Assembly (NCBI RefSeq): GCF_001194135.2
Contig: NC_069000.1
Location: 9,149,604-9,213,603, forward strand
DNA from: Octopus bimaculoides
Lineage: Eukaryota
Length of the DNA stretch: 64,000 nt
Direction of reading: 5' to 3'
Shown here piece by piece: positions 17,593-63,869 of the stretch. How positions within the stretch are numbered: the stretch's first letter is position 1; every line of letters begins with the position of its first letter. Position numbers and translations under genes: made by a program. Below the pieces are notes generated by a model. It saw only the letters and a program-made list of their open reading frames with translations. It did no database searches and was not told where the DNA came from.

Positions 17593-17664
17593 TTATTCAG
17601 GGGCTGGTTCCTCAGTTGGGGCCTCTGCAACTTGTTCTACATTTTCAGCATCACCTTCAGTTTC
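17593..17664 (-). CDS. Terminal coding exon ETEGDAENVEQVAEAPTEEPAPE*
   Basis: Manual translation. Acceptor gttttggtag|GAAACT, phase 0, 23 codons plus TAA. Acidic Ala/Pro composition matches the upstream exons. Confidence 0.75.
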   Translation of the reverse strand, partial: ETEGDAENVEQVAEAPTEEPAPE

Positions 17665-17927
17665 CTACCAAAACGTGTCCATTGGAAGAACAAGTGTCAT
17701 TTGTGACAATTCAAAGGTTTATTTTATTATTGAATTGTGTTTTTATTATTATTATTGATATGAAATAAAGAAAAAAGAAAAATTACAGTTAAGATTGGTT
17801 ACAAACATAGATTCTAAACAATATAATGAATAAAAAAAGCACAAAAACAAAAACAGGATATACACATACACATAAAATTTATATTACATTTGAGTGGTGT
17901 ATGTGTGTGTGTGTGTATGTGTGTATG

Positions 17928-18014
<87 letters not shown>

Positions 18015-18998
18015 TATGTATGAGTGTGTGAGTTTACAAAATGCAGTAGCGCAGTGGATAAGAGTGTTGAAACTTTGACAATTGCAAAAATAATACAGTT
18101 AAAGATGAGAGATAAAATCAACTTGAGCACCAGATTACAGAAATTATAGACAAACTTCACAGAAAACCTGCTGCCTACCTATTCCTGACAGAAAACTGAA
18201 CTGAGGTGTAGATAATAAGATACACTAACAAAATATTTACTGAAATATCTGCAGTAGATCTGAAAGCAAGAGTTATTAAGTTGGTAGTCCAATGCTATAT
18301 TCTCTCAAGCATTCTACTGGTATATTCTTAACTTGGGCTAGTGTAAAGATTTTGAAACCTTGGACAAGAAATTTTGAAACTCTAGTGTTATCTTTAATAT
18401 ACAAATGTGAATTGTGAAACCAGTAGAGGGAGAGAACAGAACTGGCACATAGCATTCAAGAGGATGTTATACAATCACTTGATCCTATTAAAAATAGTAA
18501 CCAAATTTGCCTTAAAACACACCCTACCATCTTAGAAAAGGAACAGCTTACTGGAAAATATAATTCTAAATATACTATCTGTAAAAAATAAAGACATGAA
18601 ATAGTCATAAATTGAAGACCTGTGATAATAGATCTGTTCTGTCAAGACCTAATTGTGTCCAGTGGTAGCAATGGCCTTTATTTTAATTAAATAGAGAATC
18701 AGAAATTTGAATTAAAAATGAAATAAAAAGACAAAACAAAAGAATAAATACACAGCCAAGTATGGCACCTAGAGATGATTGGAGAATCATGCTGGCTAAA
18801 CATAAAGTTAGAAACATTACAAAATCCTTACTACACAGATTTAATAAACGGTTTCATTATTCTAAAGGCATGTGCAATTCTTTGCTCAATTGGTCATCTT
18901 TATTGGCTCTGTATCATAATTTCATTTGTTTTTGCTATACTACCACATGTATTCAATGAAAACTTTAAATAATAACGATAATAATAATAATAATGATC

Positions 18999-19032
<34 letters not shown>

Positions 19033-20941
19033 CAACAACAATAATAATGACAGAAACTAACAATGATGACTATGAAACATGAATGATGACTAGCTAGAAA
19101 TAATCCATCATACAACATAGAATTGATCAACCATGCAGCCATGCAGTCATGCAGAAGAAGAAAATACAAACTGTTTTAGCGAAGTCAATAAAGAGAAAAA
19201 CAAAAACAAAAACTTTTCAAAACTCAAAGTAGACTGAAACATTCTTTGTAGATATTTCAAAATATTCCAGATTTTGGTTCCATGAAATTTAAGCAGCTAA
19301 TAGCTTGGTGAAGTTGATAAAGTTCGTGTTTGGCTCAAACTGCAGCAGAGTGGTGTTTGGAGAGAAGCTACAAGCAAGGAGGGAGTCCAGAGCAATTTCA
19401 GTTCCAAAAAACAGAAATAGTGACATTGTAGAGTGACAAGAGGCAGATTCATCAAATGGATTTAGATGAGAGTTATACGGAATTAGCCAGTGACAGGAGT
19501 TGCAACGTGTTTAAGATTAAAGCAACTTAATTCTCTAATATTCCAGCCCACAATAAATAGATTTTTCAATGGTGCATATACAACAAGATGGATTGTGATA
19601 ATTTAAACATATTCCCATTTACATTGACTTCAAAACAACCAAGTGTTAACTAGAATTATTAGAAAGGAAAAGTGTCAGCTTTTATCACTTCCCTAGTATC
19701 ATAAGTGAAGCTGATCATAAAAAATGAATAAGAAATTGAAAAATTGGAAAATATTTACTACTATTGTTTTTATATTTGGTTTGCAACATTCCTGATGTGA
19801 ATTCGTGTGTTGAAAACAAATTTTGTTGTGTCTTGGGAGAGTCGTCATGCCAACCAACTGACTAATAATAAAGAAGTGGAATTGAACCTTATTGGTGTAA
19901 TGACTCTCCTAAGATACAACTAAATTTACGATTATATTATATATCTAGCATAAAAAAACTCAAGACATATAACTGATCTCTTTGTTTAGAGATTGTAGCA
20001 TCAACACACTACAAGACACATGGCAAATAGCAGATGTAGTGGATACTTTCAGAGCAATGGTCATGATATTTACTTCGGCTTATCTAATTAACTTACACTG
20101 TCAGAAACTTTTATGTAATCATAAATGGTACTTCAAAAGTCATACAATTATAAATTAATCTACTCCTATAATGCAAATGTATTTACAACAAATATGTCTA
20201 ACTAATCTGACAGAAGAAATGTTTTTTTCAACTCACGAAAACAATAATTGTGTTTCTTTAAATAAATAATCAACTCCTTCATTCAGATATGAATGAACAG
20301 GTTTGAAGGAGAAGAAAAATATGAAGTTGTAGTGATCATATATTTTCCCAAGTTCATTAATAGACAAAATATAATAACACCAAGTGGAAATCAAAAATTA
20401 ATTGAATTACAATTACAAGCTGATTTGGAAGTTACTTGATTTGTAATATTGAGCTTTAAAATGATGATTACTGAGGAAATATTGACTTTGGTAGTCTGCT
20501 GTTGCTCAATGTCTTGTGTAGTAAATAGGCACTTGCACAAGCAGCATCTCCTTTATGAACACTGTTATACATAATCAAAAACCTCTTAACCGAAGTAGAT
20601 GAAGATCCACATTAGGGCTTTCATGACGACTGGACAATTTTACTATTCCTATTTTGATTTGGACAAGATTTCAACTTCACGCTAAAAACCAATCAAGTCT
20701 AGGAGTATTTAGTAAGTTAAATGCAAAAGTATGCAAAATGCAGACCCTAATTTTTGTTCTTAGGCTCCTACTTCTGTGTTTCTTACTGAAAGTTTGTTTT
20801 AAATAATGAATTTAGCTCTTTTTTATGCAAGAAAGCTTTCTTTCTAAAACTTGTTTTTAAGAAATTATGAAGAAAATATTTAAGAAATCCAATTAATTCA
20901 ACACTCAGCAAACTATCTTTTCCAAACCAAGCATTTCCCAA

Positions 20942-20986
<45 letters not shown>

Positions 20987-21251
20987 CTTAACTTTCTGTC
21001 TACTCCACTTTTTTACTCTCTCACTAACAAATGGAATAAAATATGTGTAGCAGAAGGTGCACATATGAATTTCTTCTGATATTGTTTCTTCCTCAAGATA
21101 TCCCTAAAACATCATCTTAAACAAGATATCAGCAGTTATACTCTAAAACACAAATAAAGTGACTGCAAGAAATAGACTAAAGCAATGGCTTTTTGTAGTA
21201 TTGCTTAATATTCTCAGCAGATTTCTTTGCTATTGTGGCTTGGTAACTTAC

Positions 21252-22615
21252 TTGAACTTCTTCTGCATTCACTTCTGCTGCACTGGCTTCCAGCTGAGAT
21301 TCAGGATCTTCTGCTGTATCAGCAGTTGGACACTGAATAGATGCTTTGCTTCCTGTTTCAGATACACGTGCTTCATCTTGTGTGGGTTCTTGAGTGGCCG
21401 GTGGTTCCGCTGGTAAGGAACCTTGGCTTGGTCTTGGAGACATCTGAGCAGGAGGTGTTTTACTCGGTAAGGAAGATTTGCTTTCTCTTTGAGATAGTTG
21501 AGCAGGAGGTGGTGTTTCAGCCTGCACAGAAGTTTTGCTTCCTGCCTTAGGTGATGCAGGTGTTTCATCTCGCAAGGAAGTTTTGCTTGTTCTTTGAGGT
21601 GACTGGGCAGGAGGTGTTTCACCTCGCAAGGAAGTCTTGCTTGTTCTTTGAGGTGATTGGGCAGGAGGTGTCTCACCTCGCAAGGAAGTTTTGCTTGTTC
21701 TTTGAGGTGACTGGGCAGGAGGTACTTCAGCTTGCAATGAAGTTTTACTTTCTCTCTGAGATGTTGGGGCGGCATCTGCTTCAGCTTGCAATGAAGTTTT
21801 GCTTTCTCTTTTAGGTGACTGGGCAGGAGGTACCTCAGCTTGCAAGGAAGCTTTGCTTCCTCTTTGAGATGATGGAGTACCTGGTACCTCAGCTTGCAAA
21901 GAAGTTTTGCTTTCTCTTTTAGGTGACTGGGCAGGAGGTACCTCAGCTTGCAAGGAAGTTTTGCTTTCCCTTTGAGATGATGGAGCAGCTGGTACCTCAG
22001 CTTGCAAGGAAGTTTTGCTTTCTCTTTTAGGTGNNNNNNNNNNNNNNNNNNNNNNNNNNNNNNNNNNNNNNNNNNNNNNNNNNNNNNNNNNNNNNNNNNN
22101 NNNNNNNNNNNNNNNNNNNNNNNNNNNNNNNNNNNNNNNNNNNNNNNNNNNNNNNNNNNNNNNNNNNNNNNNNNNNNNNNNNNNNNNNNNNNNNNNGAAG
22201 TTTTGCTTTCCCTTTGAGATGATGGAGCAGCTGGTACCTCAGCTTGCAAGGAAGTTTTGCTTTCTCTTTTAGGTGACTGGGCAGGAGGTACCTCAGCTTG
22301 CAAGGAAGTTTTGCTTTCCCTTTGAGATGATGGAGCAACTGGTACTTCAGCCTGCAAGGAAGTTTTGCTTTCTCTTTTAGATCCAGCAGGAGATGTTACA
22401 GCCTGCAAAGAACCTTTGCTTTCTCTCGGAGATTGTTGAATATCACCTACATCACCCTGGACGGAACCTTTGCTTCCTCTAGATAATCGGGGTGACTGGA
22501 TTGCACCTTGCAGGGATTGTTGGCTACCTTTAGCAGATAAAGGAGGGCTAGATATTTTTTCAGCTGCAGGAAATTCTTCAGCAACAGGCACATCACCTAT
22601 TTCCATTAGAGGTTC
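21252..22615 (-). CDS. Large Ser/Pro/Ala/Glu/Gln-rich exon carrying an 18-aa tandem repeat array
   Basis: Acceptor ttctacag|GAACCT at 22616/22615, in frame with ORF 21269..22606 before the gap. After gap 22034-22196 the frame of ORF 21177..22007 continues the repeats. Consensus donor CAA|GTAAGT at 21252/21251. Confidence 0.88.
21430..22430 (-). repeat. Coding minisatellite, 54-nt unit with alternating A/B (108-nt) higher-order structure
   Basis: Unit starts gaagttttgc at 21901, 21955, 22009, then 22197, 22251, 22305, 22359 (54-nt spacing). Peptides SLQAEVPPAQSPKRESKT and SLQAEVPAAPSSQRESKT. Confidence 0.95.
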
Positions 22616-23285
22616 CTGTAGAATTATTTATAAAATATAATAAGTAAAACATGCAAGATTCAACATAAACATAGAACATATTAAACATGCTGCCATTGAC
22701 AAACTGTTTTGATAGACATAAACACAGAATTAAAAAACATTATTTTTGGTATGACAAGGGAAAGTACATTGAAAATTATCATCATCATCGTATTAACGCT
22801 ATTGTTATCCCTAATATCATTAGTTTCTACATCTATTAAATAAAGCTTATATAGTTATATAAGAGTGTGTGTATGTGTGAGAGGGGGAGAGAGATAGGAG
22901 AGAAGAGAAAGAGGGGAGAGGCAGAGGAAAAGAGAGAGTGAGTGGGGGAGGGCCGTAGGCTTCAACCAACAGAGATAAAAGAAGTTTTCAACTTTTAGTG
23001 GTATTAATACAGTATATTAAACCTTGCATAAATTTTTAAAGTTTTAATTATGCAACACTGGGAAATTTGTGTCTCTTGCTGCAAGGGGCTTGAGAAGAAT
23101 ATATTAACATCAGTTCATTGTCCTAAAAGGAAGCCGAAAGGAAAAGTTGATCAGGCATAAAGGTAATTAACTACTACAGAACAAAATATCACAAGGTATT
23201 GTTGATCAATGCACTGATTCTGCCATCTTGTGATGCTATTAACCCATATGCTCAAACACTGCAGTGATAGGTGGAAGGGAGTAAT

Positions 23286-23287
<2 letters not shown>

Positions 23288-23352
<65 letters not shown>
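23288..23352. repeat. (AG)n microsatellite (similar tracts about 10760-10815 and 44008-44080)
   Basis: Direct reading. Confidence 0.95.
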
Positions 23353-23355
<3 letters not shown>

Positions 23356-23657
23356 ATAGTGTCAGGGGTTAATGAGAGTAGTTGGGTTTGGGGTTGAAAA
23401 GGAGGATAATATAGGAAGAGGTAGGAGTAAAGAATTTATGGCTACACTGACTGGCAGAACAGAAAGAATAGTAATGGGTTCTATTTTTCATTAACTTTTG
23501 CCAGAGTAATTCAGTAGATATGAGTGACAAATGGTAGAAGGGAAAGGAGAGGGCCACAAGCATAGACACATATGGAATTTTTATTTTTCTGATGGAAGTA
23601 GAGTTCAACTGTTTCTCTGTTTACTATAAATTTGATTTTTTTTTTTCTAACTTAACT

Positions 23658-23960
23658 TTAAGACCCTTTGATTCCAGGCTTTGCTTCCACACCTAGAATT
23701 TCTTTTTCTGCTAAAATTTCAGCTATAAGAATGAGGTCATCAGCATAAAGGAATTCTGATAAGCAACCAATCTTATAATAAAAACAAAAAAACAAAACGA
23801 AAAAAATCCTTCTTACAGCCTGGAGGTCTATAATGAATGGGAGAGAACTGAGGACTGAGCCTTGGTGAACTCCTACCTGCACACTATCATGGCTGTACTT
23901 GGTGCTAACTCTCAGATTATCCATATACTTTAACTTCAACACCTCACCTATAGTATCTAC
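23658..23960 (-). mobile_element. Decayed RTE-clade LINE, reverse transcriptase core
   Basis: Translation VQVGVHQGSVLSSLPFIIDLQA...FLYADDLILIAE contains the RT QG and YADD motifs. Confidence 0.85.
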
Positions 23961-24329
23961 CCTTTTTCATATTCTCCTTCTTAGTTGTTGGGGCTCTAGT
24001 TTTGTGAATAAAGTCATGCATGACTCCTTTACAGGTGAAGAGATTTATTGAAAATTTCTTATATCTCTACTTCTCATGTCATCTCAGCATGTATCTTTTG
24101 TTTTTAACAATACAGCTAAGATCATTTAGTTAAATGTATGTACTGTACATTGTTTCTATGGGTAAAAGTTATATGTCCATCTTAGAAAATTAGTGATATT
24201 GTGTACAGAGTGAAACAGGTATTGTGTGAGCCCACAGAATTTCAAACTAATTTAAGCAAAGCTATCTACTTAAAACAGTTTCATCAAAAAGGTTCCAAGT
24301 TAAAAATCCAATCTGGGTGTTTATTTAAA

Positions 24330-24363
24330 AGTGGGGGAGAGCTTTTACCTCTGTTGGCAACCA

Positions 24364-24401
<38 letters not shown>

Positions 24402-24545
24402 AAGTGAAAAGAAGATTGTATGATGCATGCATATAAAAGCAATTCTACATGATAGTGAGATGTGGGCCTTGAATGCAGAGGACATGCAAAGGCTAGAGAG
24501 GAATGAAGCTAGTATGCTCTGCTGGATGTGCAATGTTTCAATATT
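24330..24545 (+). mobile_element. Decayed RTE-clade LINE, region C-terminal to the RT core
   Basis: ELLPLLATK, interrupted by (TC)n, then AILHDSEMWALNAEDMQRLERNEASMLCWMCNVS, typical of RTE ORF ends. Confidence 0.8.
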
Positions 24546-27500
24546 CACCAAGATCTTTCAGTATTTTTTATCATTCCTTTCAGTTTGTTTACACACATTT
24601 CCATTTTTATCATGAAAAAAAAAAATCAATGATTCACAAAACCATACACATGCATACAGAAAGTCTATGTCTAAAAAAGATAGTGGGAGGGAGAAAGAGT
24701 GACAGTTTAGGCCAAATAGTACAAACATTATATGTTGTGTGTGTGTGCAGAACACATATATCTTTAATATAAATAGTGCAGAAAGTAATGTTAAAAACTC
24801 AAGATGCAATATTCTTTGAAACACACACATTATTCTTCTCTTGTTCAAAAGGTAAAAAATAATAAATGATATTGTTTAGCTTATCAAGAATAAATAACAC
24901 ATCCTCTCTGTTTCATTTTCTCTCTTATACTTTTATTGTTTTATTGATAGTCTCTTTCTAAATAACAATTATTGTTGCTTCCATGACTCAATGTTGCTTC
25001 ACAACCTATCTAAATTGGAATTTATTTGAGAAATTTTAGTTAAAGTTTTCTAAAATGTTAGCAATAAATTGCTTAACAAACTCTTTGTTTATAGTATAAA
25101 GAAACACTCAATTGTATGTAGGGGCAAGAATTCTAGGCATCTCTACTATATTTTCTATCTTTTGAAAACTTTTATATATGATGCAAGCAATATGAAATAC
25201 AGAATACAAAATTTTTCCTTGACATAAGCAGTTTAAAACATAGATGTGTGCTGAAAATGTTTCATTCAGAGAATTAATATGACTCAAAAAGAAGAGTGCT
25301 GTAGTCACAATTGCAAATACATTAATTGCTAATCAGAAAATAATGCATATGGTTTCAGTGAGTAGATTAGTAAAAAATATTATTCTACAATGCAAGTACC
25401 ACAGTTTGTGGAAATAGAAACAAAATGATAATAAATTTTGTTAGACCAAATTTGAACAAAACACAAAATGGTTAGAATAAAAATCAGAAACAAGGCAAAC
25501 ATTTTTAGCTGTAAAATAAATACTTTCATTGTTATTTCTCATATAAATACTGAAAGAATAATCTAGAATCATTACAAATTTTGTACAAAATAAGCAATCA
25601 AAGCTGTCTTGTCATATTTTACTGCAATAGAAAAAAAATAAATTAGCTATACATTAGATGCATGAATGTGATCAAATCTACCTTTTGGAAATTAGATAAT
25701 AGAAAATTAGACCTTTGTGTGTGTGACAAAAATGTGGCATCAGGTGCTAAAATTTATAAGAGTTTTAACTAAATGCAATAGGAGTTTGAAACAAAATCCA
25801 ATAATTCATTCATAATATAATCTTCAATATTGCAAAATCAGGGCAGTTGAGAGTGGGTGGCAGGAACCTAATATTGGCAGCAATAACTTTACATGATTAA
25901 TGTGACATTTTTAGAATATAAAAAAAAAAAAAAACCCAAATGCAAAGAAGAAATAGTTGAAACCTTAATCAGATGTGCAACTGACTGGGAAGTTACAAGC
26001 AGTGCTTAAGCTTTTACCATGATCCAGTATTGCATACTAATGAAGACACCAAGTCACAATTTAGCAAAGAGAATAATCGATCATATTGAACTAGTATTTA
26101 ACTAGTAATTTATTTTACTGATCATCCCCAAGCATGAGAGGGAAAAAACTGACCCAAGTGGAATTTGATCTCAGAACTAAATATTGCAAGGCATTTTGTC
26201 CTTTATTCTATCAATTCTGACAATTCACTATTCATATATTGCTAAGAATTGGTTATATTCCACTACAAATTAATATTAATGAATGCTATATAGTAAATAA
26301 TTTTATCTAGCTAGGACTGGCTGGAATCTTATGAAGTGTACTAAATTTCTCTATGTAACCATGAAAAAGAAGACATTAAAATGATGATGATGATGTAATC
26401 TAAAGAATACAAACACAATCAGGGAGCTGTTTAATGCATTTTATAATCATTAAATGGCACATGACCTCGCTGCAGGTGTGGCTGTGCGGGTAAGAAGTTT
26501 ACTGTGCAACAATGTAATCCAAGTTTGATCTCAGTGTGTGACATTTGGGGGCAAGAATCTTCGACCACACCCTCAGGTTGTGTGAAATTTGGTTGAAGGA
26601 AATTGTGAAAATTTGTCACACACACACACACACACATGCACATGTGCAAGTGTGTATATGTGTATAACTTTGATGTAAGCTGGTGAAGGCTGTAAATATT
26701 AAGGAAACTGAGTAACTGGTGCTTTTCAAACAAAGTCTCTCACATTATGTGCTTTGCCTCAAGTTTGAAGTTCCCATCATTTTTGCAATAGGAAATGCAG
26801 CGAATCAATGATTGTCCCATTTAAAACCTGTAAACAACAACACTACAATTCACAAATTAGGATATTAAATAAAATATTGCATGATTTAATGCAAGCATTT
26901 TAGTGCAAGAAATTGTCATCACTGCCATCAACATTACTATGACTACCAACAACAAACAATGACCATCACAAACAACAAATAAACATCATCACCACCAGTA
27001 TTTACCATTATCATCACTTATTTTCCCATCTTTTTCTCTGACTTTCTTTTCCTCTCTCCCCTTTGAGTTACTTCCCTCAGTGTAACACAATAGGAAGGTA
27101 AGAATGTATTATGATATCAAATACGATCTATGCTTTTGATTAAGAAACATTTGACCAGAAACCAAGAACAGATATAAGCAACAGAACTTTTCACCACCCA
27201 AATCAATAAAAACTATCAACAAGGGACTCTTTGAGTCAACCTGCTTGAAATAACAATCTCCCTCAAATCACAAGCTGTCTTTAGAAAAGAAAATTTCAAT
27301 ATGCCTAGAAAAGGATTGTGAAGGTCATATATAAAATGTCACTGATTATCATAGGTCTACTCAATCAAGATTAACTTGGAACAAAACAAGTCTTTTTGTT
27401 TTTTTCACAAATTACAACTGAAACTGCACAGCACCAAACAGAACTTCAGTGAACTACAGATGAAACTGATTGATAAGATATCCTCTACAAACTGGTGTAT

Positions 27501-28545: not shown

Positions 28546-28581
<36 letters not shown>

Positions 28582-32125: not shown

Positions 32126-32141
32126 TGTGTGNNNNNNNNNN

Positions 32142-37863: not shown

Positions 37864-38601
37864 CCTCTTCTTTGCTTCAACAACTTTTTTTTTCTTTCGC
37901 AATATATTGCCTCGGAAATTGGCCTGAATTTTCAAAGCTGCTGCGGCAACATCGGGGTCACCTAGATCAATGTCAACCTCTTCAGTTTCTCCTTGTGTTT
38001 GAGGCACTGTTTCAGCATTTTGTACTTTCTCAATTTCTTTCTTGGAATTTGCATCCTCTTCTACAACCTTTTCCTTGTTTTCAGCATTATCATCGGTCTT
38101 TTCATTACTCTGACTTTCTTTAGCTGTCTGTTCAGCTTGGTTTGGCAACATTTCATTGGTTTTCATTTTTGTATATTCACCATCTTCAGCTTGAGCAGCT
38201 GGTGGAGTTTNNNNNNNNNNNNNNNNNNNNNNNNNNNNNNNNNNNNNNNNNNNNNNNNNNNNNNNNNNNNNNNNNNNNNNNNNNNNNNNNNNNNNNNNNN
38301 NNNNNNNGGTTTTCATTTTTGTATATTCACCATCTTCAGCTTGAGCAGCTGGTGGAGTTTCAACTGCTTCTTGCTGTTCTTTGATACTTTCTTTTACATC
38401 AGTCTTTTCTTCAGTGTCAGCCACAACGGAATGTTCTTCATCTACTTCAGTTTTCTTCTTCTTGTAGCCACGAAAGCCAGATTGTATTTTGAGAGCAGCT
38501 GCTTCAACTTCAGGATCATTTAAGTCAATGTCAATTTCTTGTTCTTTTGAACTTTCCTTATTTGACACTTGAGTGACATTTGGGGAAACTGGTGAGGTAT
38601 C
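37864..38601 (-). CDS. Acidic exon with two IQ modules (EIDIDLNDPEVEAAALKIQSGFRGYKKKK; EVDIDLGDPDVAAAALKIQANFRGNILRKK)
   Basis: Acceptor ccttttag|GATACC at 38602/38601, in frame with ORF 37771..38568. Donor AGG|GTATTG at 37864/37863; past it the ORF turns into intron-like hydrophobic sequence. Contains N gap 38211-38307. Confidence 0.88.
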
Positions 38602-41530: not shown

Positions 41531-41692
41531 CTTTTTCAATTCTTTCACATGTTGCCTAGCTATATGACCACGAAAGCTAGCTTGAATTTTGGTAGCTGCA
41601 GCAATGGTCTCTGGGTCAGTTAGATCAATGTCAATATTTGTACTGTTATCAATAACTTGTAAGACATGCCTGCTTTCAGGTGTTTCATTAAG
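41531..41692 (-). CDS. 162-nt IQ exon missed by the ORF track: LNETPESRHVLQVIDNSTNIDIDLTDPETIAAATKIQASFRGHIARQHVKELKK
   Basis: Manual translation. Acceptor gttgcctatag|CTT, donor AAG|GTAGGA, 54 codons, phase 0-0. AATKIQASFRGHI matches the GAP-43 IQ core as I recall it. Confidence 0.9.
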
Positions 41693-51465: not shown

Positions 51466-53627
51466 AAATACACATATTTACGAGTTAGTAATAGAAGGAT
51501 GCACACCACTTTTATGCCCATATCCTTTGAAGTCTCTCTCAGATTGATGAATCTCATGCCAAATTTGAAAATTATACACACTAAAATATGAAGACATACA
51601 TTTAAAATATTTTACAATTCACTTCAATGCGATTGTCTTGGAATTCAAGCACCATTGCATTCACTGAATGGGAAAGTGATGCAACAAAGGGTATTGAAAA
51701 GGGATTTTAACTGTACATGTAAATCACAGTAGTTTATTTGAATAACAAGCTGGAAATAATTAGGTACAAAGGTAAAAATCAATTGACTTAACCTTAGGAT
51801 ATTACTGGTACTTTTCATTTCCACCCCACTGCCATCTCAGAAAGATGAAACACTGGGAGAGTATGAAGAACTAAACTAGATACTGTACAACATTCCAAGT
51901 ATCTAATTTAGTTCTCCACTCTTTATACCAACTCCAACAACAACAACAACAATGATTCCTAATTAAGGTACAAGAGGGCAAGTTTATGACATTGTGCCTA
52001 AGAAGGGAGGGGGGTGGGTATAGGAAATTAAATTGACACTAGTATTTGACTAGTAATTATTTTACCTATGATAGAAAGATGAAAGACAATGCTGAGCCTG
52101 AGTAATGATGCAGGGAAAAAAGAAATGTAAAGCAACACCACAGGGTGTTTAAGCTTAGCATTTAGCAAAAGTGGCAACAACATCAACAGCAACAATGCAA
52201 CAGCAACACTCATAAGGTAATCTCTTAAAAGAAAATGAAGTTAAGATTTTTTAACAGCTTAAATATAGAAGTGGGATATCATGGACTCACACATAATAGA
52301 TTTTTTTTTTTTTCAAAAACATCTAACAATAAAAAAAATTGCAGAAAACAAACGAAACAAGGAACCAAGAACCAGAATAAGACAAGAACAAGAAAAATAA
52401 CAAAAAGATTAATATTGTGCTGTTAAGTGGTCTCCCTTTAAACAGGAGCGATACTATTGACAGAGTTGGATCAAATCAAATTACTTATACACAACCTTGT
52501 TCCTCAATAGTAATGATTGGTTTTGAATAAACACAGCTAATATTGAAAGAGAGAATGTATCTAGTTGGCTGCATTGATTTTACTGTATATATCTAACACA
52601 TTTAGAAAGTCTGCTTAAAGGATGTAAAGTAGAATTGGCCCTGGGAGGTTTAAACTCAGAACAGAGATGTATTGAATCAGATAGAAAGAAGTAATAATCC
52701 AACTCTGCAGAATTAGTTCTCTCCAAGCCAAAACCATTTTTTTCTTAATTCTAAGCCATTTACAGAATTATTATTTATATCTTTTTAACATAAAATTTCC
52801 AAGTTATTATTATGTGTGGATATATATATATATATATATATANNNNNNNNNNNNNNNNNNNNNNNNNNNNNNNNNNNNNNNNNNNNNNNNNNNNNNNNNN
52901 NNNNNNNNNNNNNNNNNNNNNNNNNNNNNNNNNNNNNNNNNNNNNNNNNNNNNNNNNNNNNNNNNNNNNNNNGTGTATAAGTATTCATAGGAAAAAATAT
53001 AAATAGTATCATTTATTTCAAAGTAATTTATCATCTGACCTGTGCCTCTCCTTGCTCAGCTGCACCCAGGTCAGATTCATGAGCGTGTTCCTGAGAATAT
53101 GAAAAAAAAGAAAGAAAAAAAAACATGCAGCAGGCAATTAGTAAGGAGTGTTAGGTAAAAGATTAATGATAAAACACTCAAAATATTTTTTTTAAATATC
53201 AACCTTTCCCACACAAAATAGAAAAATAGATAAACAAACAAAATAGAGAAAAGGAGAAACTTTAAGGTAATTCTGAAAGAGATAATGAAAATTGGAAATT
53301 AACTATTTCTACCTGAAATTCTAACAATTTGTTTCTTTATTTAGAATCTGTGTACCTCCGAGAATTACTGTGTAAGACTACAGGCTGAAGGCCACCGGTT
53401 CAAATCCTGGCTCTGTGTCAATCAGTATCAAAATAATTAGTTTGGTTTATCCAGACACAGACCAGGAAGCACTGTGCAAGTAATGACTTTTTCAGAAGAT
53501 TGCATTGCTGAGTTCAAGTCTTCCTTTGAGCCAAGTGTAGGTAAAAAGGAAATTACAGATTCTTCAAATTCACAGGATCATTTGTGATTTACTTTCTTTG
53601 TGGTACAGATAGTAATATAAACAAGAA

Positions 53628-53681
<54 letters not shown>

Positions 53682-54677: not shown

Positions 54678-54722
<45 letters not shown>

Positions 54723-55499: not shown

Positions 55500-55770
55500 T
55501 GTTTCTTGAGAATATTAAGAACAAAAGAAGTCATGCTGATTCCATGGAATACACTTGTTTTCTGTTGTCCAGTATTAGTGCTTCCGGTGTGAAGCTCACC
55601 ACTGAAGTGGAAGCAATCCAAAAGTTGTATAGAAAGACATGCATCAGCTTAGCATGTATCAGCTTAAGCAACTGGCAAAAGTTGAAAGTTCTAAGACTCT
55701 GTTCCATAGTGTGCAGTAATTTATATCATGAAAATCTTGATAAGACTAGTATCAAACTTTGGCATTGAAA
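55500..55770 (+). mobile_element. Decayed CR1/L2-like LINE, post-RT region
   Basis: ORF segment EVEAIQKLYRK...SLSNWQKLKVLRLCS resembles the CR1-group LExxQRxxTK...LSYxERLKxLxLYS motif. Confidence 0.5.
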
Positions 55771-56547
55771 GCAGTGTGAATCTATGACTTGGCTGCTGCT
55801 ACAGTGTGTCTTCTCTTTGCTAACTTAACATTTGATACTGCAATAGCTTGGAGTTGAAACAACCATAGTTTCTCCTCAGTATTTAAGTTATTTGATCAAC
55901 TGAACTATAAACTCATTATATATATTATATATATTATAGTGTTTTTGTTAAACATTTTATTTAGGTACCTATGTAATTGTGAGCAGATATAGACACCTTC
56001 TTAGGGTCCCTCACCTTTGAGCCAGTGGATTATCTAGGATGTGATAGCTAAAGAGAGAGAGAGGGCTAAAATAAGCAGCCTTAAATGGAATGCTTTTTTC
56101 AAGGACACAGTGCACTGCCTGGTTCAAGAATTTATTATTTATTTATTCATAAAATTTGTCAAATCTTTATATTAAAAGTATGTCTGTTACATATATGATG
56201 GAACTTGCACTATAGTGTAAGTAGTGGATGAACATTCCACTGATGCCTGTTTGTTTAATGTAAAATAAGTAGGTAGAGTCAGTGTGACAGTGTATCTAGA
56301 CTAGCCCTTTAAATTACAAGCATAGAACATCCAACAGGCTTCCTTATACTTCCTGTCTATGCAATTTTAAGTCTCACAAGGCTTGAGTCCTCCTCAGGCT
56401 TTGGTAGAGAATATTTGTCCAAAGTGCTACATACATTCAGATCAAACACGACGGTTGCATGATTGCTAAGTAAACTTCTAAATCACACAGCCATGCCTGT
56501 GTCTGCATGCATCCACACATACAAACACACAGATATACATATACATG

Positions 56548-56690
56548 AATGGCAGAATTGATAAAATGTTGGACAAGTGCCATGTGGTATTTTGTATGTC
56601 TTTTTAAATTCTAAATCCAAATCTCACTGAGGTTCAATTTGCCTTTCGTCTTTTCAGAGTTGATAAAATAAGCACTGGGATCAATATAAG
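56548..56690 (+). mobile_element. SINE family 1 copy
   Basis: ggcagaattgataaaatg...ctgaggttcaatttgcctttcgtc...gataaaataagcac. Confidence 0.6.
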
Positions 56691-59600
56691 TGACAATACA
56701 TTCAAAGGTAGAGTCTCAGCAATGACTGAAATACATATGAGTGCAATATTAAACAACCAGACAACAATCAGAGTAGCACCTGTTCAACTACTTAAAACAT
56801 TATTAAAGAAGTTACTATGAACATTATAATAGTTATTCTCACATGAAGAATATTTGCCAACAATTGATTCTCACTAAGCTACTGATGTTTATTTCAAAAC
56901 AAACAACAAAAGAATAATAGAATTTTCCCTTTAAAAGTAATTCAAAACAAATTATATGTTTAATTGTGCATATAATATTAAAAATATTTTTATTTCATTT
57001 TTAAAGCTATATTTATGAGTATTTATTTGTATATTTCTAGAGACATATTTTGAAATATATTGGCAATTTTTTTTGTTTTCCATTTAGTTATTTTTGCTAT
57101 AATTATGTATACTTTTATCATCACCTCTGTAGACAGATGATTAATTTTAATATCTTTATCAGATGTCCGCTTTTCATCCCCTACCAACACACATCCATCC
57201 TTTTCCTCCATCTTCACATCCCACTCTCATATAATAATTCAAGTTAATTCTGTTCAAACAGTACAGTAGAATCTAACCCCGTAGTTAAAATGCACTCTAA
57301 TAATAACATTTGACCACATCATTAAATATACCAGGCTATGAAAATAGCCAACACGTTCTCTAATTATAAAAGAACAAAGAAATTATTATGACACCAGTCA
57401 GATAATGATCTGTGATAGTAACTGTGGAATATAAAAGATGAAAATAGTCACAACCCACCCTTCACTCCCATTTCCCTGATTCATGTCCCCTTTTTTGTCT
57501 CTAACTAGAGTACTACCTATTTAGAGACTATGTGCATATCTATCTATCATTCTTTTCTAATGAAGCATTAGCTTTCTCTTCACCTCACCACAATTTACTC
57601 TACCTCCATTTGTTTCTTTTTTTCTTGACTTTCTTGTGTGTTACAAGGACATTCAAAATAAATATTAGTTAGCAAACATATGTATGCATGTGTGTTTTGC
57701 ACTTTTTGCAGAGGGTCATATTAGCAATGCCATGTATATGAAAGTATTTATGATAAATATTTCAACCAAAGATTTATGAATTGACATCCTTATCAACCTA
57801 CAAACCAATACATTCTCTATTCATTTCAAATCAATGCATGCTTTAAATACAGCTGTTAAACAGCAAGTTTCTAATTACTTAGAATCATAGAACATAGCAA
57901 CTTAAAAAATGATAAACACTGGTTCTTTTAACACACACCAGATAAGTAAACAGTTGATGGAAAATACACACAAAATAAATAATATTAATAAAAGAACAGG
58001 ACTTCCTCTAAAAAAAATAAGCTTTAAAAGATTCCTTGAATTGAGTGAATTTGAATCTCTAAATTTCTTGTTGTTACATATATCTTAAAACAAAATTTGT
58101 GTGACCATTTTCTAACAGTGTCCATTTATATTTTCCAACTCAGTAAAATGTAATAGGTGAAGTAATTGTACTTTAAGGTAATTAAATATACTAAGTTAAA
58201 ATTTAGGCACAGACACAAATAAAAGGAAAACAAAAGCTTAATGGTATAACTGTGCAATTCTCTACCAAGTAGACTACTGGAAAAAAACATGTAAGTTATT
58301 ATAAAAGAAATTTCAATAAATAAAAAAGCAGTGCTCCAGCATGGCCGCAGTCAAATGACTGAAACAAGTAAAAGAATAAAAGAGGAACTGAAAAATAAGC
58401 TCAGAAAATGCTGATGTTTAAAGAAAGAAACATAAATCAAGTATATTGATGACTCTGCAGACAATTGGTAGAGCATTCACATCACAATATAGGACAGACT
58501 ACCAACCTCCCTCTCTCCCTCTCATTCAGAACAATATAGTTCCTCAACCTACTAGAAATAGCAGCCAGGTCTCAATCTACTAAACCTTACTGAAAATAAG
58601 ATGGATGGAGCTGACTTTGGGATTGAACAGCAACTGCAACAACAACACGAGACTGCACTTGGATGTTATGGCATAAGTTTTGGATGTCATGTTCATAAAG
58701 TTTGAAATTTTTTGAAAACTGGGTTTGAATGTTCTTGGAGCCTTTCCCAAAAGGATTAAGTGGTGTATGTAATGTGAGATGAAACTAACCAGGAGTCAAA
58801 AACCTAATTAGTAAGGAGTGTATAGAACTCTCCTTGTCAGCATATGACACTACCTTCTAACCTTAGTACAGTTTTGTGAGGATGGGTGCAGTCAATGTAA
58901 CTGCCATCACTGCTGCCAAAGCTATTACTTATTTTATTGACCTCAGAAGAATGAAAGCAAAGTCGGTAGGATTTGAACTTCAAACATAAAGAAACACCAC
59001 TACAAATTATTCACTGTTAAATCCTATTTTCTTTACACTCTCTTGTTTGTACACAATATTAATAATGTATTTAATCTATTTTCTCCAGTTTTACTTGCTT
59101 TATTGCCTTGTTTCTGTCATGCAATCATAAGAGAAATGATACACTTACAATCTCATCCTTTAAACACCAGCCAATTGTATGCCTATTTCAGTCTGATATA
59201 CTGAAAGAAGAGGAGTAATATGCCTTGACAACACAATTGCTGTAGCAAAGAGTCAAACTCTTTGTTAAATAATTGAGTAAAGCAGTGCATAGATTTTAAA
59301 AATATCTCTGAAATTGTGGAATGGCTTCTTTTTATCTCTTACTGGGAGTTGAAATAGAGAAAGAAACAAGCTAGCCTGGACAAAGCAAAACAAAAATGCA
59401 GCAAGAGGGAAGTAAGAGTTAAAAGAAAAAGATGGAGTAAGAATCCAGAAGAAAAAAAAGAGGAAAGAGAGTAGGATTGGGATAATAGATAAACATGTAA
59501 ATGAGGAAAGAAGAGAAAGAAATAATCATATTTATATAAAAAATAAAATTAAAATTAAAAAAACTCAGAAAACTTAACCCCAAAAAAACAAAACAAACTC

Positions 59601-60444
59601 AAAGACAGAAACCTTTATTGCAAATACATAGCAAAACTTCATACATGGAGGAATAAATAAAACATTCTTCCAACAGATAAATTACAATAAGACACTTGTC
59701 GACATTTTCATGCGCCATGTTATGTTTGGAGCAAGCTGAAGATTCATTCTTACATACTAGATGTGTTTTTCTTGACAACTAGAAATTGTTGTCTTGTTTT
59801 TTACTTTTGTTTATGTAGTTATTAACTTCAGTCAACTTTACAACACAAATGCCTTCATAATTGAAGCTATAGTAGCTACAAATAAAGACACGATAGAAAC
59901 CTTTTAGACATAAACAATGATTTCAGTATGAAATCAAAGCTGTCATGATTTAACTACATATATTATTGCAATTTTGTGAAGCAAATAAATAAATAAAATA
60001 CATCACTTGTATAACATAAATTTAGATATTTTGATACTTGAATCACAATGAGAAGTTTAAAATATGTAATTTTCAGCATTTCAGAATTTTTTTTGAAAAA
60101 TTTAGGAAAAAATTGATGGTAATATTAGCAATCAGTGGCAACAAATTGGCCAATATAACCTGTATTTATTTTGGAATATTTATGAGTCTAATCAAGAAAT
60201 AACTGCATCAACTTCCCATCCCAGTAACAACAAAAACAACAGCAGTATCATTTATTAAAGGTGTCAGCTAAAAGAAGCAAAGAAGTAAGAAAAAAATTTT
60301 TGAAAAATAAAACTACTGCAAAACAAAACATGATTTTTAAAGCATTCAGGTATTTTCAGAATATTTTATTCAGTTTTCAAAATAAATAATGGTAAGAAAA
60401 CAACAAAAAGTTGCTCAATCTATAAAGTTGACATGTACACATGC

Positions 60445-60475
<31 letters not shown>

Positions 60476-60699
60476 ATTGTTTCTAAAAAGACCCCAATAT
60501 AAATATGTAAATATATAAATACTTAGTTTATACATTCAACTATACAGAAAGCCTACTTTATTAAACTAGTGAAAGCATAATTGTGTATATGTGTGTGTGA
60601 ATATATATATTTATATATACACACACACACATATACACATACATATAATGATGATGATGAATACGATGGTAATGACGATGATGATATTGGTTTCTACTT

Positions 60700-60895
60700 T
60701 TGACGCAAGGTCAGTAATTTCAGGGGAGGGCGTAAGTTGATTACATTGACCCAGAAATTAACTGGTACTTATTTTATCAACTTTGAAAGGATGAAAAGCA
60801 AAGTTTACCTCGGCAGAATTTGAACTCAGAATGTTAAGACAGACGAAATACCACTAAACATTTTGCCTGGCATGCTGGCAATTTTGCCAGCTTGC
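60700..60895 (-). mobile_element. SINE family 1 copy
   Basis: actggtacttattttatcaactttgaaaggatgaaaagcaaagtttacctcggcagaatttgaactc. Confidence 0.8.
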
Positions 60896-63416
60896 TGCAA
60901 TGATAATAATAATAGTAATAATAATAATAATAATAATGATGATGATGATAATATAATCCATTTATTTGTCACCAAGACCACTTATTCATACATGCATAAC
61001 ATCTCACAAAAGGATTTAAAGGACCTACTGGGGAATATGACATGATGCAATATATATGTATATATNNNNNNNNNNNNNNNNNNNNNNNNNNNNNNNNNNN
61101 NNNNNNNNNNNNNNNNNNNNNNNNNNNNNNNNNNNNNNNNNNNNNNNNNNNNNNNNNNNNNNNNNNNNNNNNNNNNNNNNNNNNNNNNNNNATATATATA
61201 TATATATATATATATATAATAGCAGAGAGGCAGATGGAAATAAAAGACACAACAGCAATTTAAATTCCATCAAAATAATGAGTTTGAAGTTCAGCAATAA
61301 ACCTACTACTTTGTAGGAGAGAAATATAGTTGATGGAATAATCACTAGTACATTACTTGTACAGAATGTAACAAGTTGATGTTAAATACAACGATACCTT
61401 TAGTTTGACACTCAAAAAATTTCTGTAACTACACTACCCTTTAAGAACAGTAGCTATGGTTGCCTTCTGTAATCTAGATACAATTCTTTCATTCATTTAT
61501 ATATATATATACATTATTTAATAACAGTTTTATTTGGTTCCATGCAGCTTAAAGTTTTACGGGCTCGTAAAATGAACCTAGCTCTTCAGGCATGGGTAAC
61601 CAAATCACATAATTCCTACCAAATATGTTGAGTGCCGCTGTCTTTCATTCAACTCAAGCATATACACACATGAAAAATAGATGAAAAATACTGTGATCAT
61701 GATTCATTGATTACAATGCAGTAATCTTTGAACAGAAGACATACATTCAAAATCCTTCATAAGTTGAAAGACTGCCCACCCACCCAAAAGTTTAGTTTTA
61801 TCTCTAAGATGATTCCTCTGGTTAAATTTCCAGGAGATAGTTTATAATAATTCTTATCTTGATTAACTAATACAGTTCTAACACAATTTGATGCTAAGCT
61901 ATTAATATATTAATCCTCTGACTTCAACAAGAAATTCGTATTTTCTGATTTCCTATTATTGGGTTGGATAATTCTGCAAATTTGAATATTTGTATATAAA
62001 TTATTACAGCAGTTATTTTTAAAGTTGAGTGCCTTACCTACTCAACTTTGAAGTGTATGCAGCAGGGAAGACATAAGGAATAAGAATAACGGTTATATAA
62101 TATACACTAAATTTATATTCAATATATTATATTTAAAGATCACTCATAAAATACAGTGTACTATTATAAATAATGGGTGAGATTTTGATGGAATAATAAT
62201 AGGATTTAAGGAATAACAATAGGATAACCTTTATAATTTAAACAAATATTTCATCAAGTATGTAATTCACAACCCTGTAAACTAATGTTCTCACACTAAT
62301 ATTATTATAAATGTAAGTTCTTGGTAATTTTTCTCTTAATCTTAATTTTTAGTGTGATTATTGTCAAATTATACTGTATTATTTGTATCCTCAGTGTTGT
62401 TACTGCTTATTATTGACTCATAAGACCATTTTAATAATGAATTGCTAGGAAAACTAAGATTAATCTCAATAATTGAATAGCAGCAATCAGGAACACAGCG
62501 TTGACATTAGGTAGTTATTTATGTAAATAAAACACGCAAAGGTTGTATGGAATGAAATTATATAAAGTAAAGTTCTCAGTAGATTTGAATGATAACAAAT
62601 TTGAAAGTGAAAATAAAATGGGACAAAACATTTATAAAAATTCTAAAAATATTTATAGTCAGAATATTAAGAAGATGTATGTAGAGAAGAATGTAGTTGT
62701 TATTTGAAAAGAGCTTATCTTAGAAAATTTCAGGCTTACATTGTAAGAAGTCTGATTGCAATACATTAAATGAATTGGGCCAAATTTTTATTTTAAAGTT
62801 AACTTATAATTTGATTACACAAACTTAACATCTATAATGACTTGTTAATTAAAACATCTGTGACTGAATAGTTATTTGACATCAGTTTATATATGTGCAT
62901 GTTTGTGCATGTGCATGCTTGCACACACAGATGCTGCTATAACTTTCAATGTAAAGATGAAGAATTATACACACATAGATTCATCTACATCTATATTCAA
63001 TAGTACTCATATACATAAATATTCATAGTCATATCTCTTGTAGATAATTATACATACATGCAGACAACTATGTAAGTATTTGTCCTAATTCTATATAATG
63101 TATTCTACAATCATAAAAGCATACATACAAATAATATTCCAGATATATTTGAAAACTCTACAAAACACTTCACACGGAAATATAAGCATGTCTTTCAATA
63201 ACAAAAAACACACAAAAGAAAAAGAATCAACAAAGGTTCAAATAAATTAAGTTCCGTGGATGATAAAGCGGAGAAGGACTACTGATGGAGCATAAAATCA
63301 TCTTCAAAACGGGTGACTAAAACAGCAAAATGTTGCGAGTCAGTCTATGGGGCAAAGGAGATCTATGGAGCAAGTCTATTGGCAAGAAAGTCAACTCATG
63401 TTTCATGCTTGCCTAC

Positions 63417-63869
63417 CCTTGAGGTATCCTTGTAGTGACTTTTTGAAGGTTTGCCATGGGACCCTCCATGTGCACGATGTCTGTTATGTCCATGTCTATT
63501 CTGAAGTTTGAGCACCTTCATCTCTTTACGAGCTTTACGACCCCGGATCATGGCCTGAATTTTCGTTGCAGCTTCATGAGCTCTTGGATCTTCTGGATCG
63601 ACTGGTGGCAGTGTTTTCTCTGCGTTTGCCTTCACTTTCATCACTTTCATTTGCTGGCGAGCTCGGAAACCACGAAACTGTGCCTGAATCTTGGTAGCAG
63701 CATGGTGAACATTTGGATCATGGAGAAGCACATTTTCATCCTGGGTTTGTGGTGACTCTGGATTCATGCGCTTGTGGTAGACATGCTGCTGCTGGTGCAT
63801 GTGTTTGTGGGGATGGTGACGGTGGTGGTGGTGGTGGTGATGTCCCTGTTGTTGTTTAGACATTTCATC
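63417..63869 (-). CDS. Exon with poly-His tract and two IQ motifs (HAATKIQAQFRGFRAR; EAATKIQAMIRGRKAR); either internal (donor after 63417) or terminal (stop at 63396-63398)
   Basis: Acceptor tcttatcag|GATGAAATG at 63870/63869, in frame with ORF 63396..63863. Possible donor AGG|GTAGGC gives 453 nt (151 codons). Reading through the donor gives VGKHET*. Confidence 0.85.

Follow-up and report, generated by a model that had tools for sequence, protein, structure and literature searches.

The DNA analysed here, a stretch of 64,000 nucleotides from Octopus bimaculoides (the window), very probably contains the 3' part of a gene that spans at least 322 kb, namely exons A, M, B, C and E and, probably, D; the gene represents the invertebrate Sp17 (SPA17)/igloo family in octopus. 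A known, widespread but poorly studied family gains an octopus member; this is not a new kind of protein. The novelty claimed in a preliminary description of the window did not outlast the finding of an upstream RIIa domain and of orthology to the Sp17 family. What stands, as far as it can be read from sequence, is the picture of a largely disordered protein with multiple IQs and probably multivalent binding of calmodulin. In the sister species the gene carries the name 'golgin B1', which is a misnomer: it appears to be an Sp17 orthologue with seven predicted calmodulin sites.

Exons within the window

The assignment of exon junctions rests on splice signals, phases and gene models from sister taxa. 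Six exons were found in the window, all on the minus strand, instead of the five counted in the preliminary description, in which mini-exon M had been missed.

Exon A (63417-63869) is an internal exon of 151 codons, phase 0/0, with the acceptor tatcag/GATGAAATG and the donor AGG/GTAGGC. It encodes DEMSKQQQ, a His-rich tract (H7-R-HH-P-H-K-H-M-H, 63795-63842), IQ3 and IQ4. Its counterparts are residues 943-1106 of the O. sinensis model P0025 (88%) and a segment of the Argonauta model P0021 (78%); in both of these models 'KTMK' from an upstream exon stands before DEMS. The His tract is kept as H10 in O. sinensis and as H9 in Argonauta. AlphaFold predicts long helices at residues 52-86 and 95-125 of exon A (pLDDT >90) and otherwise disorder (pTM 0.27). 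Because position 63869 is a splice acceptor and the gene runs on for about 275 kb past the window, the protein does not start at the ATG at 63863.

Mini-exon M (53040-53090) comprises 17 codons, EHAHESDLGAAEQGEAQ, in phase 0/0, with a polypyrimidine tract and AG acceptor and a GTCAGA donor. It is present as EHTLETEQGEADQAETQ in every O. sinensis isoform. Exon B (41531-41692) is a cassette exon of 54 codons that carries IQ5 (NIDIDLTDPETIAAATKIQASFRGHIAR; core at 41555-41587). Besides its splice sites, O. sinensis isoform X2 contains it with identical boundaries and 89% identity; it is missing from the O. sinensis isoforms X3, X4 and X5 and from the Argonauta model. Exon E (17593-17664) is the terminal coding exon, ETEGDAENVEQVAEAPTEEPAPE followed by TAA, in phase 0 with the acceptor ttttggtag/GAAACT. 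Isoform X4 of O. sinensis ends in its counterpart (EPEADAENEEQVAEAPTEEPAPE; exact boundaries, 87% identity). Exons B and E and mini-exon M are confirmed by these sister-species gene models. A counterpart of GFGANKNMENQE, the C-terminal peptide in Argonauta, was sought in the window without success, and Pfam gave no match in an RT-like intronic ORF or in two other ORFs.

Exon C (37864-38601, donor AGG/GTATTG) encodes IQ6, an acidic linker and IQ7. It is interrupted by an assembly gap (38211-38307) that represents an unmerged overlap, with an exact 53-nt duplicate at 38158-38210 and 38308-38360. Since 97 + 53 = 150, the reading frame of exon C is kept whether the overlap is collapsed or not. Collapsing it leaves 196 codons, which is exactly the single-copy reading of three gap-free Logan contigs of a close octopus (L025-L027) that contain the entire exon. 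The first 52 codons have a 98% match in O. sinensis. Further gaps, at 32132, 42597, 48843, 52843, 54201 and 61066, are intronic.

Upstream exons and alternative first exons

Upstream exons were read by local tblastn of relatives' proteins against 200 kb of upstream sequence. IQ1 and IQ2 are located on four short exons about 28-77 kb past the window's right end. A RIIa domain (PF02197, 49.7 bits) was detected 275 kb upstream on the contig and strand of the window exons (G000:C20:9488993-9489100, minus strand). Two alternative first exons are predicted, both of which end in phase 1 and would be spliced to one common exon starting with ETGHDP.

The first alternative encodes the RIIa docking/dimerisation domain and opens a reading of 975 residues, in which Pfam finds RIIa (1.6e-11) and seven IQ motifs (1.5e-37). 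The Argonauta hians model P0021 links RIIa to the exons of the window, and the octopus phases are compatible with this, with a GC-AG donor (AAAG/GCAAGA). The second alternative begins with MGCSLGK, with Gly2 and Cys3, and encodes an acidic stretch of 856 residues in which Pfam detected no domain. MGCSLGK agrees with the N-acylation consensus, as expected for a lipid anchor of the GAP-43/igloo type. The MGC isoform is disordered and domain-free, with a length of up to about 1,780 residues. Compared exon by exon, isoforms X2-X5 of O. sinensis agree at 79-100%; the MGC first exon, skipping of exons A and B, and use of exon E are all seen among them. A search with a two-module consensus peptide revealed the IQ module at no other locus of the 2.34-Gb genome.

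These upstream exons bear on the reading proposed initially, a free-standing novel 'calpacitin-like' protein with a unique mixture of PEP-19, neurogranin and GAP-43 modules, no globular domain and a start at or near the window edge. In its favor, the module likenesses are real, the MGC-headed isoform has no RIIa, and inside the window neither Pfam nor AlphaFold indicates a globular domain. Yet exon A is not a first exon, the RIIa exon and two further exons with IQs lie upstream of it, and architecture and module are common across invertebrates; we consider a free-standing protein of this kind quite improbable.

IQ modules

The preliminary description had reported five IQ motifs on three exons, and every peptide quoted there was indeed located on the minus strand. 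Pfam recognizes five IQ stretches (PF00612) in the joined window protein (E=3.1e-26); their cores are of the form IQxxxRGxxxR. A strict regular expression matched five times in the window, compared to an average of 0.005 when the window was simulated 200 times with a first-order Markov model; over 264 kb of the locus it matched seven times, always on the minus strand. IQ3 (63657-63689; core IQAQFRGFRAR, lead-in LLHDPNVHHAATK) and IQ4 (63528-63560; core IQAMIRGRKAR, lead-in VDPEDPRAHEAATK) are found by Pfam in exon A, and exon C contributes IQ6 (EIDIDLNDPEVEAAALKIQSGFRGYKKKK, core at 38455-38487) and IQ7 (EVDIDLGDPDVAAAALKIQANFRGNILRKKKK, core at 37897-37929). In the AlphaFold prediction the IQ segments are helical and the rest of the chain is disordered.

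All seven motifs of the gene fit the full IQxxx(R/K)Gxxx(R/K) consensus, which in its complete form goes along with apo-calmodulin binding. The modules differ in two respects. An acidic lead-in, (E/N)(I/V)DIDLxDP(E/D), precedes three of the seven (IQ5, IQ6 and IQ7). The serine that is the PKC site within the IQ is present only in IQ1 (IQASYKG) and in exon B, where IQ5 combines the acidic pre-IQ element with a core of the GAP-43/neurogranin type (IQASFRGH); in the remaining five IQs this position is taken by Q, M, G, N or G.

Exon D

Exon D (21252-22615, minus strand) is a putative cassette of about 374 codons when collapsed, in phase 0/0, with the acceptor ttctacag/GAACCT and the donor CAA/GTAAGT. 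It contains at least 13 tandem Ser/Pro units of 18 residues (K/Q-R-E-S-K-T-S-L-Q-A-E-V-P-P-A-Q-S-P) and is predicted to be disordered throughout. The assembly gap in this tandem repeat (22034-22196) has an exact 79-nt duplicate on either side; 163 + 79 = 242, and collapsing the overlap gives back one continuous frame. As exon E, which is farther downstream, is used, exon D lies within the transcription unit.

Exon D is probably included in the mRNA of this gene. One open frame spans all 1.36 kb, the non-repetitive ends included, and the strong AG/GTAAGT sites in phase 0 fit exons C and E. The GC content of 0.47 is exon-like, similar to that of exons A and E, whereas the introns have 0.30-0.34; the sequence is single-copy in the genome, and acidic or Ser/Pro-rich C-terminal tails are common in the Sp17/igloo family. 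Alternatively, exon D could lie outside this protein: it might be a tandem repeat, transcribed or silent, within the intron between C and E, or it might open the coding sequence of a nested gene (starting with the Met of EPLMEIGD). Real products would then end by C-to-E or M-to-E splicing or by read-through past exon C. Exon D is found in none of the sister-species models, but the O. sinensis models end in the +1 frame inside exon C and are therefore silent on the C-to-D junction. Homologues of exons D and E were sought with a region-restricted word search and an exhaustive phmmer search over 1.84 billion representative proteins. For exon D neither 5.8 billion clustered proteins nor the 1.84 billion representatives yielded a homologue, and the phmmer matches of both exons proved on inspection to be of low complexity only. 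Moreover, to the left and right of the gap the repeats also leave a second frame open, which tandem repeats permit, and the repeats have no third-position bias (11/13/14 variable sites at the three codon positions, an uninformative result). Taken with the evidence for inclusion, a position outside the protein seems doubtful to us, but it deserves to be kept in mind.

Relation to Sp17

That the protein might be 'Sp17-like' had been a side guess of the preliminary description, and this guess turned out to be right. Besides the RIIa exon itself, the reconstructed N-terminus aligns with the Sp17 chains 9fqr_Ic, 8j07_K and 7my4_A of the PDB (E=3.5e-26, 2.1e-24 and 2.4e-21). The alignments cover residues 1-136 or 1-71, start at residue 1 and reach the IQ, IQ1 being aligned with the lone IQ of Sp17. 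PKA-RIIa and RSP7, in comparison, reached only about 2e-6. Two of the PDB entries with Sp17 chains, 8j07 and 9fqr, are cryo-EM structures of axonemes. The likeness to vertebrate SPA17 is colinear over the whole 147-151-residue protein: RIIa, an Sp17-specific extension to about residue 75 (ETGHDP...DRQYN in octopus, DP...EDRFYNN in vertebrates) and the first IQ. Vertebrate SPA17 ends after this one IQ, whereas the octopus gene adds six IQ modules, the His tract and long disordered tails, and has an alternative first exon that swaps RIIa for a putatively N-acylated head.

The plan of RIIa with multiple IQs is common to dozens of invertebrate orthologues. Homologues with RIIa, 7-13 IQs and the acidic lead-in occur in Mollusca, Echinodermata, amphioxus, Nemertea, Priapulida and Crustacea; the shared plan is a RIIa or MG... 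head followed by 7-13 modules of the form EIDIDLNDPE...AAxKIQxxFRG. Among these proteins, annotated as 'Sp17' or 'RIIa domain-containing', are those of Crassostrea (LOC111125839), Liolophura, Haliotis, Mytilus, Holothuria ('Sperm surface protein Sp17') and amphioxus. With them the octopus protein shares the head (MAVPFSNTKLRV... in comparison to MSVPFSNTKLRV...), the ETGHDP junction, the EIDIDLNDPE lead-in and the alternative MG... first exons. In Haliotis, Mytilus, Ruditapes and Solemya, alternative heads (MGGKLSR..., MGGKFSR..., MGNNFS...) meet the ETGHDP junction. The octopus gene differs from them by having fewer acidic lead-ins, a His-rich tract, an MG exon enlarged to 856 residues, a length of at least 322 kb and possibly the 374-residue Ser/Pro repeat exon. 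A literature search found no paper that deals with multi-IQ Sp17 proteins of invertebrates or with the evolution of the calpacitins.

Some relatives bear other automatic names, according to which the gene would encode an ASPM/abnormal-spindle homologue, a 'golgin B1' or a 'triadin-like' protein. These names were rejected. In the exons read Pfam gives RIIa and IQ only, the calponin-homology, ASH, golgin and triadin domains that would define such proteins are absent from them, and the N-terminus aligns with the entire mammalian Sp17, which makes any of these identities exceedingly improbable.

Relation to calpacitins, igloo and radial-spoke proteins

A profile of the module placed PCP4, neuromodulin, Sp17, neurogranin and the radial-spoke IQ proteins far ahead of myosins and channels in the PDB. 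The likenesses to PEP-19, neurogranin and GAP-43 seen initially are thus well founded (profile E=1e-9 to 2e-5). The accompanying view of a new combination of three module types has to be abandoned: the modules are variants of one family repeat, from which arthropod igloo is built as well.

PCP4 (PEP-19) is the best PDB match of IQ6; acidic element, IQ and basic tail align over 34 residues (E=5.6e-6), and positions 1-31 of PCP4 match the family profile (E=1.3e-9). Unlike the octopus gene with its seven IQs, PCP4 has a single module in 62 residues. GAP-43 (neuromodulin) and neurogranin have the same AATKIQASFRGH core, with its serine, as exon B (profile E=8.8e-7 and 2e-5), but they have a single IQ, and the crystallised peptides are without the acidic DIDL element. 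The MGC exon of octopus parallels the anchoring of GAP-43 in the membrane through its acylated N-terminus; GAP-43 is palmitoylated on Cys3/4 and carries no myristate.

Arthropod igloo or 'neuromodulin' proteins have an MGC/MG acylation consensus followed by repeats of acidic DIDLxDPE and AATKIQASFRGH, and the octopus MGC isoform is alike. The igloo-type module was seen in Scylla, Penaeus, Pycnogonum and a weevil 'igloo'. These proteins are, however, only 130-230 residues long with about three modules, and the sequences seen have neither a RIIa alternative nor the ETGHDP segment. Drosophila igloo was reportedly described as a calpacitin by Neel and Young in 1994. The octopus protein has the calpacitin-type IQ, AA(T/L)KIQxxFRG; it is not small, wholly disordered and free of other domains, as the head of the RIIa isoform is folded.

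The IQ half of the module has its top PDB scores with Chlamydomonas RSP23 (NDK6) and FAP91/CFAP91 (3e-11 and 4e-8), which contain tandem AAxxIQAxxRGHxARK repeats in an axonemal calmodulin-binding setting. In contrast to the octopus protein, they carry other domains (NDK, CFAP91) and have no RIIa and no acidic lead-in. The best PDB matches of exon B were RSP23, CFAP91, Sp17 (1e-4), the neuromodulin IQ (1e-3) and the neurogranin IQ (2.9e-3).

Possible function

We infer calmodulin binding, acylation, RIIa docking and tissue distribution from the sequence. Each of the seven IQ helices would bind one calmodulin, preferably in its Ca2+-free form. In PEP-19 the acidic element tunes the on and off rates of Ca2+ at the C-lobe of calmodulin, and the acidic element of IQ5-7 could play a similar part. 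The IQ serine of GAP-43 and neurogranin is a PKC switch that releases calmodulin; IQ1 and the alternatively spliced exon B, which keep the IQAS(F/Y) serine, might be switched likewise. How many calmodulin sites there are, and of which type, would depend on the cassette exons A, B, C and D.

The two heads would direct this array to different places. The RIIa head would dimerise and dock the array on amphipathic helices of axonemal radial-spoke/AKAP proteins in cilia and sperm, and the myristoyl/palmitoyl head would keep it at membranes, as in igloo or GAP-43. Across molluscs, one locus appears to yield cilia/sperm-type (RIIa) and membrane-type (myristoylated) proteins from one calmodulin-binding array, the repeat unit of which matches PEP-19, GAP-43 and neurogranin best. 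A single locus for both Sp17-type and igloo/GAP-43-type isoforms is a lead worth following, and octopus with its large neural, ciliated and sperm tissues is well suited for comparing isoform use.

A possible origin of the calpacitins

A tentative interpretation, which we regard as possible but rather unlikely, is that the octopus locus preserves an ancestral bilaterian 'Sp17-calpacitin' gene with one module array and two promoters, one for the RIIa head (axonemes) and one for the N-acylated head (membranes/neurons). Igloo as well as PCP4, neurogranin and GAP-43 would then be break-away pieces of the N-acylated/IQ part, and SPA17 a stump with one IQ. This offers a testable route to the origin of the vertebrate neuronal calmodulin buffers and to the relatives of igloo. 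The alternative MG... first exons in cephalopods, gastropods and bivalves are consistent with such an ancestral gene, as are the lack of a second module locus in the octopus genome and the profile ranking, in which PCP4, neuromodulin, Sp17, neurogranin and the two Chlamydomonas radial-spoke proteins stand above all other IQ proteins of the PDB. Also consistent with it, SPA17 and NRGN share one interval, which is no longer than 1.3 Mb in human and 1 Mb in chicken, and zebrafish nrgnb has been named spa17.

Exon structure of the gene

Six-frame translation placed all peptides quoted in the preliminary description on the minus strand of the window. The IQ motifs lie in exon A (63869-63417; two), exon B (41692-41531; one) and exon C (38601-37864; two), and Pfam IQ (PF00612) scored five stretches in the joined window protein (E=3.1e-26). 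A strict regular expression of the AAxKIQxxFRG type matched five times in the window, compared with a mean of 0.005 in 200 first-order Markov simulations; over 264 kb of the locus it matched seven times, 7/7 on the minus strand. On splice-site inspection all in-window junctions were AG/GT and phase 0. The ATG at 63863 is not the beginning of the protein: the frame is open upstream, and an acceptor (tatcag/GATGAA) lies at 63869 which is used in sister-species proteins (…KTMK/DEMS…). The earlier exon set had also overlooked a mini-exon of 17 codons (53090-53040, minus strand), whose product EHAHESDLGAAEQGEAQ is the counterpart of EHTLETEQGEADQAETQ in O. sinensis.

Exon identities between the octopus locus and O. 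sinensis range from 79 to 100%. In O. sinensis, exon B has identical boundaries in isoform X2 (89%), exon A is skipped in isoform X5, and in isoform X4 the mini-exon is spliced straight onto the terminal exon E (87%). Because X4 joins these two, exon E is part of the gene, and exon D thus lies inside the transcription unit.

Two assembly gaps in the window are exonic, 38211-38307 in exon C and 22034-22196 in exon D; the other gaps in the range are all intronic. The gap in exon C has an exact 53-nt duplicate on both sides, and since 97+53=150 the reading frame is preserved. Exon C is present in full, without a gap, in three Logan contigs of a close octopus (L025-L027; SRR11869390/91/94); there it has one ETPPAAQ… copy and 196 codons, in exact agreement with the collapsed reading. 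The gap in exon D lies within a 54/108-nt tandem array with an exact 79-nt duplicate on both sides; upon collapse (163+79=242) the apparent frame change from f0 to f2 becomes a single continuous frame. Exact flanking duplicates (39 and 57 nt) were also seen at the gaps 15658-16457 and 32132-32141, within TA/CA microsatellites. Unmerged overlaps of this kind seem to be common at the gaps of the octopus assembly.

Three O. sinensis RefSeq isoforms (P0025, P0145, P0147) terminate in …KKKKTEEMKNIQLRLTLKKRLM and a stop. This ending is the +1-frame reading of exon C at 38446-38420 after KKKKTE (MKNIPLWLTLKKRLM, then a stop), and the models are probably cut off inside exon C by a 1-2 nt indel in the O. 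sinensis assembly or by a real difference. Read-through past the exon C donor (37863-37771) gives a hydrophobic 30-residue tail (VLILNYSAVLSHWWCSLAYCMFACGIPVCI, then a stop), the beginning of which is the same in Logan contigs of a related octopus. Such agreement may be a matter of chance in species this close, or the read-through may represent an intron-retaining, tail-anchored variant.

Two predicted alternative first exons

Local tblastn on the 200 kb upstream, together with splice-site inspection, located further minus-strand exons (in window-equivalent coordinates, with the window at C20:9149604-9213603): the IQ2 exon at 91877-91800, the IQ1 exon at 121738-121612, a 50-nt exon at 135121-135072 and an exon encoding ETGHDP at 141258-141188. 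Two first exons precede them on the same strand. The MGC first exon (229930-227362, i. e. 9376965-9379533 of the contig) comprises 856 codons and starts with MGCSLGKQAKKE in a good Kozak context; the RIIa first exon lies at ~339386-339539 (9488989-9489142 of the contig) and has the donor AAAG/GCAAGA. Each ends in phase 1 with G, and one common acceptor fits both. The RIIa-headed reading is stop-free over 975 residues, and Pfam found in it an RIIa domain (1.6e-11) and seven IQ motifs (1.5e-37). In the Argonauta hians model P0021 the RIIa exon is joined to counterparts of exons A and C.

The 856-codon product, encoded by a single exon, is very acidic and rich in Ser, Thr and Val; no Pfam domain was found in it. 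It shows 94% identity with its O. sinensis counterpart and with a 'hypothetical protein' of O. vulgaris which stops at the unspliced donor (…QTEEGML), and its counterparts in other molluscs are short, only ~20-35 residues. Three other RIIa-domain exons were present in the genome, none of them close to the window (C6:81496959-81497063, C5:122685876-122685977 and C22:18700618-18700725); presumably they belong to PKA-RII, ROPN1/CABYR-type or radial-spoke genes.

Relationship to Sp17 and to the calpacitins

The first 136 residues of the RIIa-headed reading matched mammalian Sp17 of axoneme structures from residue 1 through the IQ motif (9fqr_Ic, 3.5e-26; 8j07_K, 2.1e-24) and the crystal structure of the zebrafish SPA17 docking/dimerisation domain (7my4, 2.4e-21), whereas PKA-RIIa and RSP7 reached only ~2e-6. 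This SPA17 domain, extension included, has been described as belonging to the RIIa superfamily (PMC8339350). Homologues with both PF02197 and PF00612 were found in molluscs, echinoderms, nemerteans, priapulids and crustaceans, under automatic names such as Sp17, 'RIIa domain-containing', ASPM-like and triadin-like. Most of the NCBI-annotated homologues, chiefly molluscan, start with MAVPFSNTKLRV and have 7-13 IQ motifs, most of these preceded by (E)(I/V)DIDLxDPE. With an upstream RIIa domain and orthology to an Sp17/igloo family, the novelty claimed for the protein falls away: the octopus gene adds one more member to an invertebrate family that is already known, though its function is almost unstudied.

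In Haliotis, Mytilus, Ruditapes and Solemya, isoforms from the same loci have the RIIa exon swapped for other heads (MGGKLSRLADIVNKRRK…, MGGKFSRLKNFV…, MGNNFSLFQGCTSKKK…) with the ETGHDP junction unchanged. The N-myristoylation consensus has Gly2 and a small residue at position 6; by their sequence these heads fit it, followed by a basic patch.

The proposed parallels to the calpacitins were borne out. The best PDB match of IQ6 in exon C was PCP4 (E=5.6e-6, 34 residues), in an alignment that runs from the acidic element through the IQ to the KKK tail. Exon B matched the neuromodulin IQ (1e-3) and the neurogranin IQ (2.9e-3), and also RSP23, CFAP91 and Sp17 (1e-4). When 64 invertebrate acidic+IQ modules were combined into a profile and this was searched against all PDB chains, RSP23 ranked first (3e-11), followed by PCP4 (1.3e-9, profile positions 1-31), FAP91 (4e-8), the neuromodulin IQ (9e-7), Sp17 (4e-6), the neurogranin IQ (2e-5) and SPATA17 (1e-3). 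Myosins, phosphatases and channels came below all of these (7e-3 or worse), so the resemblances are specific. Yet they belong to the single repeat type of this family, not to three imported kinds of module. A two-module consensus matched the 2.34-Gb octopus genome (145k contigs) at this locus alone.

Igloo has been classed as a calpacitin (PMC9618489). Arthropod proteins named 'igloo' or 'neuromodulin' (Scylla, Penaeus, Pycnogonum 'igl', weevil 'igloo') consist of an MG(C) head and three modules of this acidic+IQ type. The two-headed arrangement might be ancestral, with igloo and the vertebrate calpacitins as later offshoots of it, though we regard this as rather unlikely; we found no literature proposing such an origin. 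Human SPA17 and NRGN share an interval of <=1.3 Mb, both chicken genes lie in the first 1 Mb of chromosome 24, and spa17 has been used as a name for zebrafish nrgnb.

Possible roles of the two products

AlphaFold predicted two confident helices in exon A, exactly on IQ3 and IQ4, and disorder in the remainder. The consensus IQxxx(R/K)Gxxx(R/K) is complete in 7/7 motifs, pointing to binding of apo-calmodulin. An acidic element of the PEP-19 type is present in three in-window modules; the GAP-43/neurogranin serine is kept only in IQ1 and in exon B, which is alternatively spliced. Judged from these sequence features, the gene likely gives two products. With the RIIa head it would form a dimeric calmodulin rack docked to the axoneme or an AKAP; with the MGC head, presumably acylated, it would be a calmodulin reservoir tethered at the membrane. 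Splicing could then set the number of sites and their regulation.

Exon D

Exon D (21252-22615, minus strand) is a 1.36-kb open frame containing 18-residue Ser/Pro units (…KRESKTSLQAEVPPAQSP…). At 0.47, the GC content is exon-like, compared with 0.30-0.34 in introns; its splice sites are strong and phase 0, it is single-copy in the octopus genome, and it is predicted to be fully disordered. No homologue was found in either of the two protein collections searched, the exon is not in the sister-species gene models, and its repeat variation had no codon-position bias. We regard it as a probable, not an established, cassette exon. In each unit, a site of the basophilic kinase type (K/Q-R-E/T-S-K-T-S) occurs together with an S-P site; if translated, exon D would be a dense phosphorylation array. 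In the intron between exons C and D, a minus-strand ORF (23661-23966) had no Pfam match; its reverse-transcriptase-like …FLYADDLILIAE… motif suggests a decayed retroelement fragment.
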